Positions 1 to 21,104 of a stretch of DNA of 64,000 nucleotides are shown here, piece after piece. Below the pieces are notes generated by a model. That model was not told the DNA's origin. It ran no database searches and saw only the letters and a program-made list of their open reading frames with translations. The DNA comes from Blastocladiella emersonii ATCC 22665 (taxonomy: Eukaryota > Fungi > Blastocladiomycota): assembly GCA_025594325.1 (NCBI GenBank), contig JANHCV010000003.1:1798001-1862000 (forward strand), in the 5' to 3' direction. Positions within the stretch are counted from its first letter, which is position 1. Each line of letters starts with the position of its first letter. The position numbers were made by a program, and so were the translations under genes.

Positions 1-940
1 CGCAGCAAAACGGCCGCGGCGGTCCAACCGGCCGCAGACCAACGGCGCCGCGACGCCCGCGCGCCGCAGTGGGCGGCCGGATATCATGGCGCCGCTCGTG
101 TCGTGGCTCGGCGAGGCGCGCAACGGGCTGTTGTGGAGCACGGCGCGCATGGGGTCGATCCGCAAGGTGATCGCGGAGCGCGCGCACACGGCGCTCGCAG
201 CCAAGGGCGTGTTCGGCGGCAGCCGCGTCACGGCGGCGCAGGTCAAGGAGACGCTCGAGCAGATGCTCGACGCGACTGAGCGCGGCGCCGCGTGGCTCAG
301 CGGGAACCCCGATCGGTACGTGTGGATCGCGAAGGCGTACGGTAGGGCGTTTCTGAACGGTACGGATTAGGTCCCGAAAATTTGGGGTGTGGGTGGCTAA
401 CGCGGCATCGGCGTAGCTAGCGGTCGTCGACTACCGGTGCCCGCACTTCCGCGCGCTGTTCCGCGCGTTCATGCTCGGTGACGAGGCCACGCTGCCGAAA
501 TTCATCACGCGGCCCGACGAGGTCAACGGTGACGATCTCCACGAGCTCGACGACGGCGCCTCGCAGCCGCTCGAGGACCCCGCGGCGGTGCCCGAGGCGA
601 CCGCGCCCGGGCAGGCGTACCCGCCGTCGTCCGAGGAGTACTATGTGGACAAGATCCTTGACTCGGTCGCCGCCGCGGACGCGGACCACCCGTTCCAGTA
701 CCACGTCTCGTGGTACGGGTACCCGCCGTCGCACAACCGCTGGAATTTCGGCGAGGACACGGTCCCGACGGCTGCCCTGGCCGTCGCCGAGTTCCACGCC
801 AAGCACCCGACCGCCCGCGGCCGACGGTCGCCGACGTGGCCGCGTGGGTCGACGCGCGCGAGGACGAGCTGATGCGCGCCAAGGTCGAAGCGGCTGCGGC
901 CGTGGCGGCGGCGAGCAAGGGCGGGAAGCGGTTTGCTTGA
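1..940 (+). CDS. Chromodomain protein, family paralog 1 (5' end probably outside the window; intron 360-420; apparent 1-nt frameshift near 814)
   Basis: The frame is open from base 2 to W..AYGRAFLN. A GTACGG..GCTAAC..CTAG intron follows at the same position and phase as in paralogs 2 and 3. Then AVVDYRCPHFRALF and the chromodomain EEYYVDKILDS..YHVSWYGY..NRW. The C-terminal helix PTVADVAAWVDARE lies in a shifted frame. Confidence 0.7.
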
Positions 941-9704: not shown

Positions 9705-12700
9705 ATGTCGCAGCGCGTGCACTACGGCCTCTCGCGCGCCGCGTGCGTCTCCGTGTTCCACCACCATGCCTCGGCCAAGTCCTACGTCGTACGGTTCATC
9801 TTGGGATACTAATGGGTCGCGCTCTCAGATGCTCACCGTCCCGTGCGGTCTAGGCCTTTGCGACGTCGGACGCCGTCCAAGTGTTCGACCTGACCCCGGC
9901 GTTCGCGCACGTCCAGACCCTGACGCTGCCGCCGTCGCTCGAGTCGTATGCCGCCTCGGGTCCGCCCACCATGACCGCGCTTGCGGGCGAGCCCGGCACC
10001 GGCCGCATCGCCGTCGCCTTCAGCAACGCGCGCCTCGTCATCTACGCCATCCCGCCGCCGCCGTCCTACATGAACGCCGCGCTCGCCGATACTCCCGTGT
10101 CCTGGTCCGTGACCCACGAGCTGCAGCAACGCGAGCCGCCGACCGCCATTGCGTGGACGCCCGCCGCGGACGGGCTCGTCGTCGGCAGCCGAACGCGCCT
10201 CGATGTCCTTCCGGGACCCGACTTTCGCTCGGCCGCGTGGGGCGTCAAGTGCGCCGCGCCCGTCGAGCTCGTTGCCGTCTCGCCCGACGGCAAGTGTCTC
10301 GCGACCGCCGCGAGAGACGACCGCGTCGTCAAGGTGTGGACGTGCGCCGACGACTCGCTCATCGCCCACGCCAAGCTGCGCCGCCACTCGTTCTACTACC
10401 TCCCGCACCCGCGCGCCGTCACCGCCATGTCGTGGCAGGGGTACCGTTTCGCTTCGTTTTCTCGCGCCGCAATCGCGTTCTCACGGTCGCGAACAACCGG
10501 TAGATCCAAGGACCTGCAGACCCTCCTCACCACGGCGCGCGACGGCGTCGCCCGCGTCTGGTCCTTTTCCGCCTCGCTCAAGGCCTTCCACCTCAAGGCC
10601 GCCATCGACCCGCGCACCGTGCACGTGTGCCCCGGCCAGGACGTGTCCTCGTTCGCCTGGCTCGGCGTCGACCGCATCGCCCCGCGGCCCGCGGCCCCCG
10701 TATTCCTCGCCAACCAGTCGACCGCTTCCACCAAAACCGCGCTCGCGACCGACCCGCAACTCGCCGACCTCGTGCACCAGTACGACGACCTGGTCCTGTC
10801 GGGCCAGCCCGACGGCACCGTGCTCGTGTGGGGCATCGCCAACCTGCTGCGCCACGCCGGCGAGACCCGCGTGCACCTCGTCAAGATCGTCCCCGGCGCC
10901 GTGCGCAAGTCCGACGCCGCCGCGTTTCGCAACCTCCAGATCGCCCAGTTCGCCTTCGACGCCTCGCCCGAGCACCTCCTCATGCTCGGCACCCCCGACG
11001 AGGGCGGCCAGCTCGCGTGCTTTGCCGCGAACGCCGGGTCCGTCATCTACCGCCCCAACACCAAGATCTCGCTCGTCCGCGCGTGGTCCGGGCATACCCG
11101 CATGGCGCCCACCCCGCGCGTCTACTCGGTCGGCCTCGCCGCGCGACAGCTCGTCACCCAGGTCGACGGCGAGGTGCTCGTCTGGGACCCCGCCAAGTGC
11201 CGCATCGGGATCCGCCAGCTCAACGGGCTCCCGCTCGCGCGCCGAATCGCGCTGCCAGCGCCGCCGCGGTGGTTCTTCCCGACGCCCGCGGGCGATGTCG
11301 TCGTCTTTGATGAACGCGTCGAGTGCGCTGGTCATTCGGCATCGCTGCTCGCTCCTGCGATCGCAGCGGTAGCGTGTTCCGCAGCGGGCGAGTCGGGCGA
11401 CCGGCTCAGCGTCGCGACCGCCGACAGCCTCACCGTGTACGCGCTCCCGTCGCTCGACGTCGTGGCCGAGGCGACGAGCCGGTGCGACCTCGCCACCTTT
11501 GTCGACTGGGCCGAGGGCGTCTACCCGTCGCCGCCGTTCCACCTCGTGCAGCTGCGCAGGTCCACCGTCACGCTCATCGACGCGGCCGGCCGCACGGTGC
11601 ACAGCGAGGACATCTCCGTCCCGCTGACCGCCGACGGCGCGCAGGTCCTGCAGCTCTCGGCCGCAAACCACACGCTCGCGATCCGCACGTCCGCCGCCGT
11701 GCACCTCTTCTCGTTTGCGCTCCTGCACCACGCCGTGACCCACGAGCACACGCTCCCCGCCACCGCATCCTCGGCCGCCTTGTTCCCGCTTCCGACGGGC
11801 GCCGGCGCCGTCCTCGCCACCGCGCGCGACCACGTCGTCGCCGTGTACGCGCACCAGCCCGCATCGAACGCGCTCGACCTCGCGGCCGCGGGGACCTGGG
11901 CCGAGCTCGCGCCCGCACATGCGCTCGACGGGTTCGTGGACGCGGTTGCGTGGTCGGCGCAGGGCGACGTCGTGGCTATGGTCGGCAACCGGCTCGTGGC
12001 CCTCGACCCGGTCCCGACCTTCGTCGAGCGCGCCCTCGACGCCCACGTCGCGCCCGCCGACGCCGCGTGCGTCATGCGCGAGTGGCTCCAGTGGAACCGG
12101 CCCGACGCCGTGCGCCGGATCCTCAACCACAAGTACTACGCCGTCAAGCACGGCGAGGCTACCGCGCCGCATGTCCCGTGGTCCGCGATCGAGGCGTGTG
12201 CGCTCGGCGGGGCCAAGGGCGCTGATGGTGCGGGTGGCGGTGGTGCGGCGTCGCTCGGCGACGAGCTCGACGCGCTATTTGCTGCTGGCGGCGAGTCGGA
12301 CGGCGCGGGCGACATGGACCTGATCGACACCAAGACGTTCAACTCGGAAAAGGCCAAGGCGCTGCGCGAGTGGCTGGTCGCGCACGGCACCGAGCGCGAC
12401 AAGTACACGATCGCGATCCTCGACGCCGTCAGCGAGCCCGAGTCGGCGTCCATGGGCGAGAACGGGCAGCGGTTCCGGTGGGACCTGCTCCTGTACGTGC
12501 ACTGCACGCGGCTCGGGTTACCCGCGGCGCCGCTGCCCGCCGAGTCGGTCGCGTTCGCCTTCTTCTCGGACGAACAGCCGGCCCTCGTCGAGTACATTGC
12601 CGGCGCGTGCACGCTGACGTGGGACGACGCGGCCAAGCTCGGCGCCGGGTGGTGGGTCACGCACCCAGATGCGCTGCGCACGCTGGCCGAGGTGATCGCC

Positions 12701-15700
12701 CGCAACCACTGGCGCAAGGCAAACAACCCGCACGACTGCTTCCTCTTCTACCTCGCGCTCGGCAAGCGCAAGCTCATGCAGACGCTGTGGAAGCAGGCCA
12801 ACGGGCACCCCGAGCAGCAGGTCATGTCCAACTTCCTGAGCCAGGAGCCCTCGGATAAGTGGCGCAAGGCCGCGCTCAAGAACGCGTTCGTCCTCCTCGG
12901 GAAGCAGCGGTTCGAGCTCGCCGCGTGCTTCTTCCTGCTCGGCGACTCGCCCAACGACGCCGTCACCGTGTGCCTCCGCAACCTCGCCGACCCGCAGCTC
13001 GCCCTCCTCATCGTCAAGCTCCTCGGCAACCCGCTCCCGCCCATCGTCGACCTCCTCCGCCAGTCGCCGCACGTCAACCTCGACAACCCGTGCTTCCCCA
13101 TCATGCTCGACTGGATGGCCGGGTCGCGTATCGTGAACATGGCCCGCATCACCTCGCCCTCCACCCTCCTCCTCTACCAGTCCATCGAGGCCAAGCTCCA
13201 GTCCCAGTTCCTCACCTCGTCGACCGCCACCCGCGCCGAGCGCAGGATCGGCGTGTGTAACGCCATCGCGTGGTACCACGCCCGCGGCGCGGCGTACTTT
13301 AACCGCGTCCTCGTCGAGACTCTGCCCGCGCTGGCCGCGGGACTCGCGAGTGGATCGGGTGGTGGGGCTGATGAGTTTGGCGCGGATGCAGAAGGCAGTG
13401 CGGGCGGCGGCGACGATTTCGCGGCCATGTTTGGCGGGCTCGGGAACGACTTGCCGCCGACGTTCGGCGGCGGAGGCGGCAGAGGCGGGCTGTTCGGGGA
13501 CGATGATGATGGATTGTTCGGCGGGCGAAGCAAACCCATGGCCGACGACCTGTTCGGCGGCAGCGGCGGCGGCGATACCGCGGACGACCTGTTTGGCGGC
13601 CCGTCAACGCGCAGTACCGGCGGCGGCGGTCTCTTTGACAACGATCCAGAGCCACCACGGTCAACCTCGCCGCCGGCACCCGCAGCCGCCCCCGAACCGA
13701 CGGGCCCGCTCGTCTCAGACGACGAGGTCGCGCTGACGCGCCGCGCCGACCACCTGCTGACGCTGTGGCCCGCGCTCAAGTCGATCCACAAGGTGGCGAC
13801 CACGGGGCTCGCGCAGGACCTGTACTTTGACGACTACGCGCGGCACGCGCTCGACGCCGCGTACCCGGGCGCGGACCTCGCGCAGGACCTGGCTATCTTT
13901 GACCGGCTCGCGTGGCAGACGCTCGCGCCGCACCTCGACGCCGCGCGCGCCAAGGCGCTCCGCGTCGACCTCCTCCTCGCGCTCGAGTTCCGCGTGCTCC
14001 ACCACCTCAACGGCGCGCACGAGTACCCGCCCGAGCTCGTTACCGCAGCGACGCGGTGCCTGCACGTTCTCGCGAGCGTGCACGTCCCGCCCGTCCACGG
14101 GTGCGCGAGCGGCGCGAACGCGGGCGACGCGGCGCTTTTCGCCGGGATCGAACTGTTCCCCGCCCACGTCGTCGCGCTCGCCGTCGTCCTCGTCGCGCAT
14201 CTCATCCTCGCGCGCCCGACGTACCGCGCGCTCGCCGCGATCCTGCGCCATTTCGTCCACGCGCTCAGCCCCGCGGCGTCGCCCGCGGCCGTCCGCGCCA
14301 TGTACGCCGAGGTCATTGAGAATCTCGGAGATGTGCCGTCGTCGCACCACCACGTCCTCGAGTACCTCGCCCTGCGCACGCTCGCCCACGATATCCAGGG
14401 GTTCGTCGACGAGCACGCCGGCGAGATTGCACCCGATACCCTGCGCATGCTCGCCGACGTGTGCCTCCCGCAGCTCACGCACCTCGCGCGCCGGATCCAC
14501 GCGCGCGTGCATGCGGAACCTGACGGTGCTATCGTCCACTCGCCCGCCGACGACTGGCTGTCCGCCGCGCAGCAGGAGCTGTTTGAGGCGCTGCGCTGGA
14601 ACAAGGCGTGGCTCGACGATCTGCGCGCCGCGGCGCCCGCGGGATTGGGTGCGGAGGTTGCGGTGGCCGCGGATGCTGCTGGTGCTTCAAGGCCAGCGTC
14701 ACCGCCCACGACGCCGTTCCAGTGCAAGGTCGACATGCTGTTCAAGCAGGACGCGGCCATCTACTCGCTCGCGCTCGGCCCCGCGCAGTCGACGCTCATC
14801 GCCGGCACCCAGCGCGCGGTCCTCGAGATCGACGTCGAGCGCGCGTACCGCGGGTGCAACGCCGAGGCCACCCTGCCGCCCGCCGGCGCGGTCGGGTCCA
14901 GCAGCGGGTCGCCCGGCACCGAGGAGTCGACCCGCGCACCAACCCCCTCCGCCGCCGCGGCCGTCTCGACGCTCGGCGCCGACCTGCTCAAGAAGGTCCA
15001 ACAGATCCCGCGGAGCACGTCCGACCAGGGCCAGCTGTCGCTGACGGCCGCGGGCGGCGCAGATGCCGGCGTCCTCGCCGCGTACCCGTCCACGGGCGGC
15101 GCGCAGGTCGCGAGTCACCCGGCCCTCGCGCACTACGTCGTCGCGGACGCCGTTGACGGGACCACGGTCCTCTCGCTCAACGCGTACGGCGGGCGCGCGG
15201 ATGTCGTGCGCGTCGCGTACGGCGCGGCTAAGGTCAACCGGCTCGAGCTCGACGCGGTCGGCGGGCGCGTCGCGGTCGCCGACGGTACGGGCGAGGTCGC
15301 GATTCTTGGGATTCCGACGTTGCGGATGTACTCGGTACTGTTCACGGCTTTCGATTGCTGCGCTTTGAGTGCGTGACTGACGCGTTCGTACAGGCCTTCC
15401 CGTGTCACACTCGCGCGACGCACGATGTGGTGTTCTACGGGTCCAGCACCGTCTTCGTCTCGGCGGGTTCGTCGCCCGGTCACCTGTACGAAACGCTGCT
15501 CGGTAACGCTGTCACGTTCTTGTGCTCACAACTCTACGTTACGCGAGTAGGAACAACGTCGCGCTGTGGGACACGCTCCTCCCGAGCCACGCTGCGCGCG
15601 TCCGCGGGTACCACCTCCACGAGTCTGGCGCAACGGCCATCGCGTACAACGGCAACCTCGTGTTCTCGGGCGGCAAAAAGGGCGAGATTCGTACGTTGCT

Positions 15701-16348: not shown

Positions 16349-18714
16349 CTACGCGCTGCCCTCCTCGGCCTTGCGCAGGCGCTCCTCCTCGTCGAGCCAC
16401 GGGATCCACTCGTTGAGCTGCTCGGGCGTCGGCTTCGGCTTGGTCGGGTTGATGCGGTGGAACTCGGCCACGGCCTCGGGCGCCGTAGGGACCACGTCGG
16501 GCGCGGGCGTCCACGGCCGGTGCGACTCGACGCCGTGGTGCCGCCAGTAGATCTTGTACTTGATCCGGCCGTACGCGTCCTTGGTGCGCGTGTTGACCAT
16601 TGAGTCGACGATCGCCTCGACCTCGAACTCGTCCTCGTCAAAGTCGGAACCTGCGTGCATGCAGCATCCCGTCCCGCGGCCGCCACCGGCCTCGTCGTCC
16701 TTGTCGCTGCTACTGCCGCTACCGCTCGAGGACTCGGCGTCGGGCTTGCGCTTGCGTGGCGATGATGGCGTGGGCTCGGGCCCGTACGGGTCGCGGTGCA
16801 GGAGAATGTCGCCGAAACAGATCGGCGCCCGCGCCATGGCCCACTGCGCATGTGCCTCCCACGCCTGGTTCGCGGGCGTCGGCGTCCACAGGGGAATCTC
16901 GGAGAGCGGCGTCGAGGGAGCGGGCTCCGACTCGTGCAGCTTGGCGAAGTCTGCGTCCGAGACCGACTCGCGGACGCGCTTCCGCGGGCGCAGCGGTACG
17001 TCCTTGCGCATGTCCGCAGGGACGAGCCCGTTGAGCTCGGGCGGGTACTCGATGCGCGCGGCGCGGACCAGCGACCCAATGTCGGCGGCCAGGCGCATGA
17101 GCCACGGGAGGTCGGCGGGCGTGAAGCCGAACGCGTCGAGCAGCGTCTTGAAGTTGTGGCAGCGGAGGTTGATGACGGCTAGGGGTACAACGATGAGCTC
17201 TCCTCGAATCAGCGACGACGACAAGGAAAGCGGATACGTACCATCAACCGTCTCGCGGCCATACGCCGTGAGAATCCACTCAGCGTGGCGCGACGTGCGC
17301 AGCCACGCGACAGTCGCCTCGACCTCGTGCAGCAAATTGTCGATTTTGGACTTGATTACATCGAAATGCCAAACGTCAGGGCAACCGCGGCCAGAGTAAA
17401 GCTGCTCTTCCAGGTATTCTTGGACCTTGAACACGAGCATGACACGATCGTTTGACTTGGGTAGCGTGTTGCGCCATTTGGCGCCGTAGCGGTTCCGCAC
17501 GAGCCAAGCTGGAAGCATCTTTCTCAGCTTGTTCACGTCTTCCCGGAACGTGTGATTCTGTGGTGCCTTCCCACCAGTCGATTTTCTGGGGGGCGGTCGC
17601 CACGAGAAGTAACGTGTGGGAGATATAGAAGCGGACCGGGGGCGAGACGCAGTCTGGGAGGATGTGCGGGACGGAGAACGAGAGCGTGGGCGGCCGCGTG
17701 CGTCATTGCGCGCAGAAGGCTGAGGTTGCGGCGCGGCCGCGCACAGCGGACGAGGTGGTGCGATGGCAGGAATATCCGACATGTCCTTATCCACGCTCGT
17801 AAGATCGATGGCTGGAGGGTCAGGCTGGACCAAAGAAAGTGAGGAAGGTTGAGGTTGGGTACGAGGCGCGGCGGGCAGAGTGGTGGTGACGGAGCTGGAG
17901 GCACTGTTTGAGGCGCATGAGTCTGCGTGCTGGCTGGATGCGTTTGGACGAGGAAGCGGCGCGGGCTGCTGCGATTGATCCAGGGGCTCCGCTGAACCGG
18001 GAACAGGTATTAGCGGTTCCGCTGGGGCTACGGGCAACGGGTCCGCCAACGGTTCAAGTTTTGGGGCGACCTTGTGCATCAAAGTCCTGGTCGTTCTGGT
18101 CAAGACCGCTGATGCAGAAGCTCCGTGCGCTTCGACAGCGGTTTGGCCTGGCTCCCGTTTGACAGCAGGCCGATGTTTGACGGAATTGCCAGGCTCCTGT
18201 TTAATCACAGGTGCCGCAAGCGGGTGCAACGGGCCGAGATTTGGGCCCCATAGCTCGAGAAGCCGAGTGTAGAGCGGGAAAATGTGCGGCAGAGCGTCTA
18301 TCGTGTATTCGAGTGTTGAAGTCAGTTGAAATGAGACTAATCTGGAAATGTAGCGTTTGCGTGTGTACCGTCAAATTTCATGCAAGTCGGTTCGCCCAGC
18401 TCGAGTGCGGCAGTGACACGAAGCTGGTGCTCATTCACGAAAGCAGACCGGAGTTCGAGCAGGCGGCTTGCGACCTGTTCCCGCGAGCTTACGACGCCAC
18501 CGCCCGCGGAATCACTCAAGTGGAGGAGAACTTCCTTGCTCAACTCTTCAAAGCGAAAGGCAGACATGTTCTCGGTTAAAAAGTCTTCCACGTCAGCCGA
18601 GCGGTCCTGGAGAAAGACAAGGATCCGGTCGTCGAGCTCGGAGCCCGACCACGCCGGCCGCCGCGAATCGAGGTCCAGCTGATCGTGCAGCGGCGGAAGC
18701 ATGCTTGGGAACAA
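16349..18714 (-). CDS. Chromodomain protein, paralog 2, with an internal H3-tail-like motif (2 introns)
   Basis: Exon 1 WSGSELDDRILVFL..KFDG; RKSTGGKAP at 17561-17587; chromodomain EFEVEAIVDS..KYKIYW..RPW..AVAEF; colinear with paralog 3. Confidence 0.8.
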
Positions 18715-18948
18715 AGTTGCAGAAAGTCCAGCGTGTTTATTTCATGCGAGTAACGTTGCAAGTACGAGTGCGAGGAGGGAACGGACAGGGTGGCGAGGAA
18801 CTCGCCTTGTTTCAGCCCGGACTCCGGCACGCCAGGTCACGAAGTGGCGCAACACGTCCCTCAGCGTCGGCAGGAGGGCGGCGCGAACCCGCTCCGAGGG
18901 AGCCATACGAGAACTAGGTATAATCGGATAGATCCATGTCACAAACCC

Positions 18949-21104
18949 TCAGGCCTCGTCTTCTTCGGCCTTACGCTGCCGCTCCTCCTCGTCAAGCCAC
19001 GGGATCCACGCGTTCATGTGCTCAGGCGTCGGCTGCGGCTTGCCCGGGTTGAGCTGGTGGAACTCGGCCACGGCCTCGGGCGCCGTGGGCGCCGTCAAGT
19101 GAGAGGGCGTCCACGGCCGCTTCTTGTCCACGCCGTGATGCCGCCAGTAAATCTTGTACTTGAAGCGCTGAAACGGATCCGTACTCTTGGTGTTGATCAT
19201 TGAGTCGATGATCGCCTCGACCTCAAACTCGTCCTCAGCGAACTTCGCGCCCGCCTGCTTGCACCCAGATGCTGACTGGCTATCGCCGCGACGCTGCATG
19301 TTGGCCAAAAAAGCAGGATCGGGCTCGTACGGGTCGCGGTGCAAGAGAATGTCGCCGACATTGATCGGTGCATGGACTGCCGCCCACTGCGCCAGCGGCT
19401 CCCACATTTGGTTGGCGGGTGTCGGGGTCCACAACGGGATCTTGGATATCGGCGGAGCAGCGGGCTCCGACTCGCGAAGCTTGGCGAGGTCCGCATCGGC
19501 GACCGAGCGCCGGACGCGGTCGCGCGAGCGGAACGGCACGTCCTCGCGCGTGTCACCGGGGACGATGCCGTTGAGCTCGGGCGGGAACTCGATACGCGCA
19601 GCGTGAACAAGCTGGCTGATGTCCGCCGTCGACTGCAGGAACCACGGCAAGTCCGCCGACGTGTACCCAAACGCGTCGAACAGCGACTTGAAGTTTGGGC
19701 AGCGGAGGTCGAGGACAGCTAAACGCGCGAGTGCAATTTGCGATGAGTTATCGTTTAATTTGGGAACAGCGAGGCATGTCAGACCGTACCATCGACCGTT
19801 TCGCGCCCATAAGCCGTGAGAATCCACTCGGCGTGTCGCGAAGCGTGCAACCACTCGATTGTTTCCGCAACCCCGCGCAGGAGTTTATCGATTTGATCGC
19901 TGATCATTTCGCGCTCCCAGAGATCATGAGAGCAGTTCGCAGCCCGCGCCATCTCCTCCAAGTTATCCCGGGCGTTGGAGGTTAATTTCCTGCGCGAGCG
20001 TGAGTCCGGCAGCGAAATGCGCCATTTGGCGCCGTAGCGGTTACGAGCGAGCCATGTGGGAAGGAATCTGAGCAGCTCTTTGACCTTTCGCTTGTGCGAT
20101 GGGTCCGATTGCGATGTCTTGAACGGTAGCATTTTTCGCGGTGCCTTACCCCCAGTCGACTTTCGAGGAGCAGGACGCCACGAATAGTACCGCCTGGGAG
20201 ATACAGAGACTGAGCGAGAGCGACCGAGAGCGGCTGAGCGAGCTGCTTCAGACTGACGTTGGGGCGTCACCGCGGACTGCAGTTGAGGGGGCGGGAGCGG
20301 CGAGCGCGGGTCCACGTCCATTGGCTCGCCGTCAGCAGGCTGATGTTGCGGGGCAGCAAGAAGCGAGAAAGGCTGAGGTGTGGCGGGTAGGGCGAGGGCC
20401 GCCGCAGCGGTTCGGCTGTCGAGAGTAGTGGAAGCGCTCGTTGGCCAATTATCACCTTCCGCTGACGGAGACAAGCCCGAGTTAGGCAGGCGTGGTGCTT
20501 GATCGTGAGCCGCAAAAAGCTGATCCGACGGCGGTGGAGACTGTAGTGAGGTAACCTCAGGCTGATCGACTGTCGCGGCCGCGAAAGGGGTCGGCTCGGC
20601 GAGACCAGGCTCCCGCTTGACGGGCGCCTCAAGCGGCGAAAAGGAACCGAGAATCGGGCCCCATAGCTCCAGCAGCCGAGGGTAAAGCGGGAACATTGAA
20701 GGCAGCGCAACTAATGGATCCAAGCAGGTCAGTTGAAAGGGACTGATGCGAAACCCCAAGAGGCCCGTACCGTCAAACTTGGCAAAAGATGGACCATCAA
20801 CCTCCGACGCGGCGCTCGCACGAGCCCGGAACTCGAGCAAGAAAGCAGTGCGAAGCGCAAGCAGCCGACCAGCGACCTGCTGCGGCGGACGCACGACACC
20901 GCCACCAATGGAGCTACGGAGGTGCTCGGTGATCTGCTCACAAAGAGCCTCAAACCGAGCGATAGACGTGCTCTCCGTGACAAAGTCGGTCAGATCGCGC
21001 TTCCGGGTCTGGAGGAAGCTGAGAACCTCGCCGTCGAGATCGGCGTCCGACCAAGCCGGTCCGGCCGGAGGCGGATCCAGGTGGTCGTGGAGCATGGTCG
21101 ACAA
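18949..21104 (-). CDS. Chromodomain protein, paralog 3, with an internal H3-tail-like motif (2 introns)
   Basis: Tandem duplicate of paralog 2 with the same intron positions; RKSTGGKAPRK at 20133-20165; chromodomain EFEVEAIIDS..KYKIYW. Confidence 0.8.

Follow-up and report, generated by a model that had tools for sequence, protein, structure and literature searches.

A histone H3 tail-like stretch under purifying selection in a chromodomain protein family of Blastocladiella emersonii

The DNA analysed here, referred to as the window, is a stretch of 64,000 nt from Blastocladiella emersonii ATCC 22665 (contig JANHCV010000003.1, positions 1,798,001-1,862,000 of the forward strand, assembly GCA_025594325.1). 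It carries two tandem genes on the minus strand, paralogs 2 and 3, which belong to a family of five members located within about 100 kb of this single contig. In four of these members (paralogs 2 to 5), a linker ends in a stretch identical or nearly identical to residues 8-16 or 8-18 of the histone H3 tail (7-18 in one of them). As judged from the comparison of codons among the paralogs, this stretch is under strong purifying selection, in surroundings that evolve almost without constraint. At the sequence level the finding is solid, and the function that we infer for it below is testable. The two copies of the window are the following:

Positions 17561-17587, minus strand: RKSTGGKAP of paralog 2, equal to histone H3 residues 8-16; amino acids 349-357 of the 739-aa three-exon model.
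Positions 20133-20165, minus strand: RKSTGGKAPRK of paralog 3, equal to histone H3 residues 8-18; amino acids 291-301 of the 671-aa model.

The coordinates of both motifs, reported in the first-pass annotation of this DNA, were confirmed by translation. With the H3 numbering (R8 K9 S10 T11 G12 G13 K14 A15 P16 R17 K18), paralog 2 reads PPP-RKSTGGKAP-QN (the translation of 16349-18229 on the minus strand contains SWRPPPRKSTGGKAPQNH) and paralog 3 reads PAP-RKSTGGKAPRK-ML (the translation of 18949-21104 on the minus strand contains SWRPAPRKSTGGKAPRKMLPF). Paralog 4 carries ARKSTGGKAPRK in the context SPA-RKSTGGKAPRK-LD; Ala7 is kept in this copy, which matches H3 7-18 at 12 of 12 residues. Paralog 5 carries RKSTGGRAPKK in the context PNS-RKSTGGRAPKK-SF. 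The motif is encoded by AGA AAA TCG ACT GGT GGG AAG GCA CCA in paralog 2 and by CGA AAG TCG ACT GGG GGT AAG GCA CCG in paralog 3, and over the nine shared codons these copies show five synonymous and no replacement differences, exactly as first listed. Of the 27 nucleotide sites of the motif, 10 differ in at least one of the four copies, among them seven third positions of codons and the first position of AGA/CGA, where the change is synonymous. The sole replacement within the nine codons is K to R at the K14 equivalent of paralog 5, where R17K is also found outside of them. R8, K9, S10, T11, G12, G13, A15 and P16 are invariant in the four carriers, and the variable positions are 7 (P, P, A and S), 14 (K or R), 17 and 18.

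The presence of the motif in two more paralogs of the same contig indicates that the match to H3 is not due to chance. Furthermore, both motifs of the window are found without any difference in contigs of three public DNA runs sequenced from the same sample, so that an assembly error is not at their origin. In two DNA runs, one Logan contig each joins position 17326 to position 20137 and skips 2810 nt, the shorter side being 29 nt. Rather than a real deletion allele, this join most likely reflects a k-mer crossing from one tandem paralog to the other. All four carriers are non-histone proteins, and their RKST is an H3K9-like linear motif of the R-K-[S/T] type. The AlphaFold2 (AF2) predicted local distance difference test (pLDDT) is below 50 over the motif, which is therefore predicted to be disordered and accessible.

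The rate of nonsynonymous substitution (dN) is 0 across the nine motif codons of paralogs 2, 3 and 4; the proportion of synonymous differences (pS) is 0.65-0.78 when paralog 2 is compared to paralogs 3 and 4, and 0.13 when the latter two are compared with each other. In the flanks, taken as the eight codons preceding the motif and the 25 that follow, the proportion of nonsynonymous differences (pN) reaches 0.4-0.6 and the ratio of dN to the synonymous rate (dN/dS) is close to 1. The dN/dS ratio is 0.2-0.4 in the folded domains of the family and about 0.4-1 in the remaining linker. In the four-way alignment, among about 200 columns of linker, no invariant run is seen other than RKSTGG and AP. 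These values are in agreement with the earlier claim of an H3-identical stretch maintained by purifying selection in a non-histone family, and the synonymous differences among the paralogs exclude a recent conversion from an H3 gene. The flanks had been described as barely alignable. This description holds upstream of the motif, whereas downstream only 12-22 variable residues separate it from a well-conserved domain (LPAWLARNRYGAKWR).

Paralogs 2, 3 and 4, when compared, resolve into three exons separated by two short GT-AG introns, which occupy identical positions in each gene. The first intron lies after KFD in the N-terminal domain and the second one after AYGRETVD. The resulting genes of the window are:

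Positions 16349-18702, minus strand: paralog 2 gene; exons 18702-18369, 18297-17242 and 17178-16349, GT-AG introns of 71 and 63 nt, 739 aa.
Positions 18949-21095, minus strand: paralog 3 gene; exons 21095-20771, 20710-19790 and 19718-18949, GT-AG introns of 60 and 71 nt, 671 aa.

The paralog 4 protein counts 704 aa. In the four motif carriers, the frame running from the conserved FPLY..LELWGP block via the linker to the next domain contains no stop, whereas the two other frames contain 1-6 stops, and all linker insertions and deletions are in phase. The comparative evidence favours translation of the motif, given this open linker frame, the in-phase indels and the almost entirely synonymous variation. 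The G+C content at third codon positions (GC3) of the linker is only 0.55-0.7; it was rejected as a sign of non-coding DNA, the clearly coding and conserved N-terminal domain having a similar GC3. A gradient is observed within the genes, exons 1 and 2 having a GC3 of 0.55-0.75 and a dS above 1, and exon 3 (16349-17178 in paralog 2, 18949-19718 in paralog 3) a GC3 of 0.85-0.97 and a dS of 0.15-0.5. This pattern suggests GC-biased gene conversion among the paralogs, restricted to their 3' part. The public models of the family are mutually inconsistent. H9P43_003483 (paralog 4) includes the motif and is devoid of the N-terminal domain, and no public model of 214-1095 aa matching paralog 3 was found in protein searches.

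From the N-terminus onwards, the proteins are deduced to consist of a helical domain, about 200 aa of disordered linker, the H3-tail stretch, a helical domain that is probably Myb/SANT-like, another conserved domain and a chromodomain. The N-terminal domain gave no Pfam match and no lead from ESM features. The chromodomain, of the chromovirus-integrase type, was placed at the C-terminus:

Positions 16430-16630, minus strand: C-terminal chromodomain of paralog 2, chromovirus-integrase type; cage residues F648, W675 and H678.
Positions 19030-19230, minus strand: C-terminal chromodomain of paralog 3; cage residues F580, W607 and H610.

The presence of a chromodomain in the same polypeptide, proposed in the first-pass annotation, was borne out by profile similarity to solved chromodomains. 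The Pfam Chromo profile (PF00385) gave 16.3-17.6 bits, which is under its gathering cut-off of 25.1. A profile built from the family only retrieved the solved chromodomains of Chd1, Rad8/DNMT5-type proteins, CDY and HP1 at E-values of 2.5e-5 to 5e-3, and after addition of chromoviral rows the solved H3K9me readers CDY, CDYL, HP1, MPP8, Clr4 and Chp1 were found at 1e-14 to 1e-9. The nearest relatives of the domain in the big library are the C-termini of Ty3/gypsy integrases, with a FHVSLLEPY-type motif upstream. The cage positions are F, W and H in paralogs 2-5, and Y, W and Y in paralog 1, which lacks the motif. The distance of about 300 aa initially given between the motif and the chromodomain is correct only once the 63-nt in-frame GT-AG intron of paralog 2 has been removed.

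Between the H3-tail stretch and the chromodomain, a compact helical bundle is predicted next to the motif (AF2 pLDDT 80-92; predicted TM score of the domain model 0.60):

Positions 17123-17515, minus strand: compact helical domain of paralog 2 after the motif, probably Myb/SANT-like, spanning the intron 17179-17241.
Positions 19663-20063, minus strand: the same helical Myb/SANT-like domain of paralog 3, located from alignments and spanning the intron 19719-19789.

In structure comparisons it is closest to the DNA-binding domains of Sap1, GT-1 and Zeste (Z 5.3-6.2, weak). The neighbours among AFDB clusters are Myb/SANT-like, LIMYB-like and NAM-associated proteins (probability 0.9-1.0 and TM 0.45-0.54, weak), and those found with ESM are Myb_DNA-bind_3/4, MADF or DUF6818 clusters (cosine 0.82-0.84, weak). 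A second VIA search with the domain model returned unrelated helical matches, and no Pfam match was obtained at E-values up to 10. On these predicted structures and neighbours, the domain is probably Myb/SANT-like. It had been claimed that no histone fold follows the motif, and indeed no histone match past the tail was found in the fold or profile searches: none was present among the VIA or Foldseek matches of the two models, nor among the matches of the helical domain profile against the PDB at E-values up to 10. Foldseek with the full-length, low-confidence model and the ESM Atlas shape search gave nothing usable. Counted in register, the predicted helices roughly coincide with H3 alphaN, alpha1, alpha2 and alpha3. 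A diverged histone fold after the motif was considered and rejected, given the lack of similarity past about residue 47, the lack of histone matches and the compact bundle predicted.

The H3 likeness of paralog 3 is not limited to the 11-mer:

Positions 20040-20132, minus strand: the 31 residues of paralog 3 that follow the motif, ungapped and in register with H3 19-49, with 7 identities.

The in-register identities outside the 11-mer (7 of 31) are L20, K23, V35, K36, R40, P43 and A47, and the likeness runs to about residue 47. When the end of paralog 3 exon 2 was compared to the PDB with phmmer, H3 chains were retrieved at E-values of 1e-3 to 5e-3, in an ungapped alignment covering H3 7-50. 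The in-register stretch has a BLOSUM62 score of 15, which is reached by 0.05% of the shuffles of the paralog 3 segment (P = 5e-4); this post hoc test draws on a single paralog. In the region of this extension, 10 residues are deleted in the other carriers. H3 residues 1-6 are present in no carrier, and position 7 is unrelated except for the A7 of one copy. The in-register extension in paralog 3 favours descent over stepwise convergence, and the stretch probably derives from a captured 5' coding segment of an H3 gene. The initial description of the stretch as a histone mimic stands as far as its identity with H3 is concerned, and is to be amended in that the stretch is probably a descendant of H3 coding DNA.

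The sole close database match of the family is a hypothetical protein of B. emersonii ATCC 22665. When 1.84 billion cluster representatives (50% clusters) were searched exhaustively with a profile, only the family itself and isolated chromodomains were obtained, without any relative outside B. emersonii, and separate searches of the 90% clusters revealed no orthologue in another organism. These searches agree with the lineage specificity put forward at the outset, and within their scope the family appears restricted to B. emersonii. Loss or free substitution of the motif in orthologues had been named as a sign against its importance. These searches having found no orthologues, the comparison was made among the paralogs, where the motif is not freely substituted. 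Besides the tandem pair, the window contains the end of paralog 1, and paralogs 4 (P0001, H9P43_003483) and 5 (P0002, H9P43_003481) are located about 85 kb further on:

Positions 2-869, plus strand: C-terminal ~270 aa of paralog 1 (P0004), whose start lies upstream of the window; divergent, without the RKST site and the middle-2 domain, with a Y-W-Y cage.

Paralog 1 has lost the K9 site; it keeps AAKRPRR aligned to GGKAPRK with a spacing nearly as in paralog 3. It is annotated as a protein of 1545 aa, the first 1000 aa of which are leucine-rich repeat-like (upstream part L002:10001-15145), and two genes may be fused in this annotated protein. Between paralogs 1 and 2 there is a 1831-codon open frame (9881-15376, plus strand), part of which matches the Rav1/WD40-type gene seen where L002 ends. 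Neither long terminal repeats (LTRs) nor terminal inverted repeats flank the family genes, only paralogous coding repeats being found there, and neither an integrase nor a reverse transcriptase occurs near the chromodomain, the neighbours being ordinary genes. The hypothesis that these are transposon genes was rejected for lack of terminal or long terminal repeats and on account of the ordinary neighbours. The family genes contain introns and evolve under purifying selection like cellular genes.

The reading that we favour, at somewhat less than an even chance, is that the stretch would act as a built-in surrogate H3K9 site. In this mechanism, a SUV39/Clr4/DIM-5-type H3K9 methyltransferase would dock on the invariant core RKSTGG and probably methylate it. 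The methylated stretch, or the stretch phosphorylated at its S10-like residue, could then become a ligand for chromodomains: that of the same protein in cis, giving a closed state, that of a paralog in trans, giving oligomers, or that of HP1. The binding of the protein to DNA or chromatin might in this way be coupled to the H3K9 methylation pathway, a coupling that can be likened to that of the automethylated G9a, SETDB1 and Clr4, or of the Swi6 ARK loop. RKST is the sequence recognised by SUV39H1 and SUV39H2, the latter also reading G12; both enzymes are blocked once S10 or T11 is phosphorylated (PMC8303541). Early-diverging fungi have retained Clr4 and HP1 (PMC9963178), and known H3K9 mimics with a four-residue core are methylated and then read (PMC10611923, PMC6172828, bioRxiv 10.1101/2025.10.22.683908). 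The surrogate H3K9 site is preferred because RKSTGG, the readout of SUV39-type enzymes, is frozen and Ala7 and K14 are not strictly conserved. On the alignment, the conservation pattern fits HP1 readers and K14 enzymes less well than SUV39/Clr4-type writers.

Several observations weigh against this surrogate site. Selection was measured among the paralogs of one genome, and conservation in a family known from a single genome is conservation among paralogs only. For the 4.9-kb stretch containing both genes, the run listing gives only the three DNA runs, in which the introns are kept, and no RNA run. The public model H9P43_003463 (paralog 2) starts at an internal Met downstream of the motif, and H9P43_003481 (paralog 5, L001:2181-3953) splices the motif out. 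With the acceptor homologous to that of the other copies (ttgcag|ct), paralog 5 has an in-frame TAA at the sixth codon of exon 2 (L001:2319-2321), by which its N-terminal domain is cut off from the rest; its sequence indicates that it may be N-terminally truncated or decaying, and exons 2 and 3 are otherwise intact and under purifying selection. All motif carriers have His as the third residue of the cage, which in its canonical form consists of three aromatic residues. The K14 equivalent of paralog 5 is Arg. Finally, three of the four copies have Pro or Ser at position 7, which should weaken binding by HP1-type chromodomains, for which Ala7 is critical. The first-pass annotation had raised this caveat for Pro7; it applies to the P, P and S copies and not to the paralog that keeps A7.

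An alternative that we judge unlikely is that the proteins are competitive decoys or anti-silencing factors, whose stretch, no productive substrate, would occupy the active sites of K9 writers, erasers or kinases and block heterochromatin locally, where the Myb/SANT-like domain and the chromodomain bind. This corresponds to the titration proposed in the first-pass annotation, and the same motif evidence is compatible with it. Moreover, the modules look transposon-derived: the chromodomain is of chromovirus type and the Myb/SANT lead is Harbinger-like. Transposon-derived anti-silencing factors are known in plants. However, decoy and substrate are not separable at the sequence level. The genes lie among ordinary genes without terminal repeats or LTRs, have conserved introns and a host-like dN/dS of 0.2-0.4, and a stoichiometric titration of abundant histone tails would be hard to achieve.

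A more speculative extension, to which we give only a small chance, starts from a survey of fungal Clr4 that infers the loss of its N-terminal chromodomain in the ancestor of Blastocladiomycota (PMC9963178). The family might be a trans-acting replacement for this lost reader module, binding H3K9me chromatin by its chromovirus-derived chromodomain and holding the chromodomain-less Clr4 by presenting an H3(8-18) tail to its active site. If this were true, read-write spreading of heterochromatin would have been restored from a histone gene fragment and transposon-derived domains.

The enzymes and readers of S10, T11 or K14 (an Aurora-type kinase, GCN5/SAGA, 14-3-3) could be the partners in place of the K9 machinery, as the first-pass annotation had supposed for S10 and K14. 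RKS fits the Aurora consensus and G-K-x-P fits a GCN5 site, Pro at position 7 disfavours HP1, and G13, A15 and P16 are invariant in the four copies. On the other hand, K14 is replaced by Arg in paralog 5 while R8-G13 never change, and a kinase site requires far fewer fixed residues. The R8-G13 pattern fits SUV39/Clr4-type K9 writers better, and we consider such partners improbable. We also consider improbable that importins or H3 chaperones recognise the basic stretch, which would serve for nuclear import or chaperone hitch-hiking. The stretch is indeed basic and disordered, and the H3 tail is a nuclear localisation signal read through its lysines. Such signals, however, tolerate many substitutions, whereas S10, T11, G12 and G13 are invariant here at saturated synonymous divergence and the basic residues K14, R17 and K18 are the varying ones.

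It is very improbable that the stretch lies outside of the mature protein, in an intron or a 5' leader, and is conserved for another cause. The exclusion of the motif from H9P43_003463 and H9P43_003481, the listing of DNA runs only, the frequency of long chance open frames in DNA of 65-70% GC and the modest linker GC3 speak for it. Against it stand the almost entirely synonymous variation of the motif, a frame that stays uninterrupted and in phase across the four carriers in spite of numerous indels, the equally modest GC3 of the coding N-terminal domain and the inclusion of the motif in H9P43_003483. A neutral relic, i.e. a captured H3 fragment without function of its own, is already disfavoured and scarcely tenable: H3 descent is likely and paralog 1 has lost the site, but paralogs 2, 3 and 4 show zero replacements at near-saturated synonymous divergence in an otherwise fast-evolving linker.

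The family would provide a cellular copy, kept by selection, of the H3K9-S10-T11-K14 region, 9-12 residues long and located in the same polypeptide as a reader domain. If the surrogate-site reading is true, it constitutes a natural test of the tail residues needed by the K9 machinery, with R8-G13, A15 and P16 frozen and positions 7, 14, 17 and 18 free. It also offers an entry to heterochromatin control in Blastocladiomycota, where almost nothing is known. In practice, KSTGGKAPR-type peptides released from these proteins of 70-80 kDa coincide with the diagnostic H3 9-17 peptide, antibodies against H3K9me, H3S10ph or H3K14ac could cross-react with them, and the current gene models hide the motif in two of the four carriers.

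Among known systems, G9a/GLP (ARKT), SETDB1, the autoregulatory loop of Clr4, ATF7IP (K16, read by MPP8), LIG1, WIZ and CDYL have in common with the family an R-K-[S/T] H3K9-like site in a disordered region. Their sites are substrates of K9 writers and then ligands of chromodomain readers (PMC10611923, PMC6172828, bioRxiv 10.1101/2025.10.22.683908, 10.1101/2025.01.21.634156). These mimics have about four core residues (PMC10611923), whereas 9-12 consecutive residues are identical to H3 in B. emersonii. Unlike the methyltransferase mimics, the family has no methyltransferase domain. The ARK loop of Swi6/HP1 is similar in that a chromodomain and an H3K9-like peptide are present in one polypeptide, which allows closed and open states and oligomerisation. 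The Swi6 loop, however, has three residues and is located inside the chromodomain, whereas the stretch described here stands in the linker, about 300 aa upstream, in proteins with a F-W-H cage and no chromoshadow domain. The chromodomains of chromovirus (Ty3/gypsy) integrases are the nearest relatives and share the FH..NP.KP tail. Fungal group-I chromoviral chromodomains bind H3K9me. In contrast to chromoviruses, the family has introns and no nearby integrase, reverse transcriptase or LTRs. The Myb/SANT-like group (Myb_DNA-bind_3/4, MADF, trihelix GT-1, Zeste), often of Harbinger-transposon origin, supplies the best neighbours of the helical domain, all with weak scores. With histone H3 itself, residues 8-16 or 8-18 are shared, whereas the stretch is found in the middle of proteins of 670-740 aa with no detectable histone fold. 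In kind, the family is a case of histone mimicry; it differs from the known ones by the length of the stretch, its probable homology with H3, the pairing of domains and its occurrence in a single early-diverging fungus.

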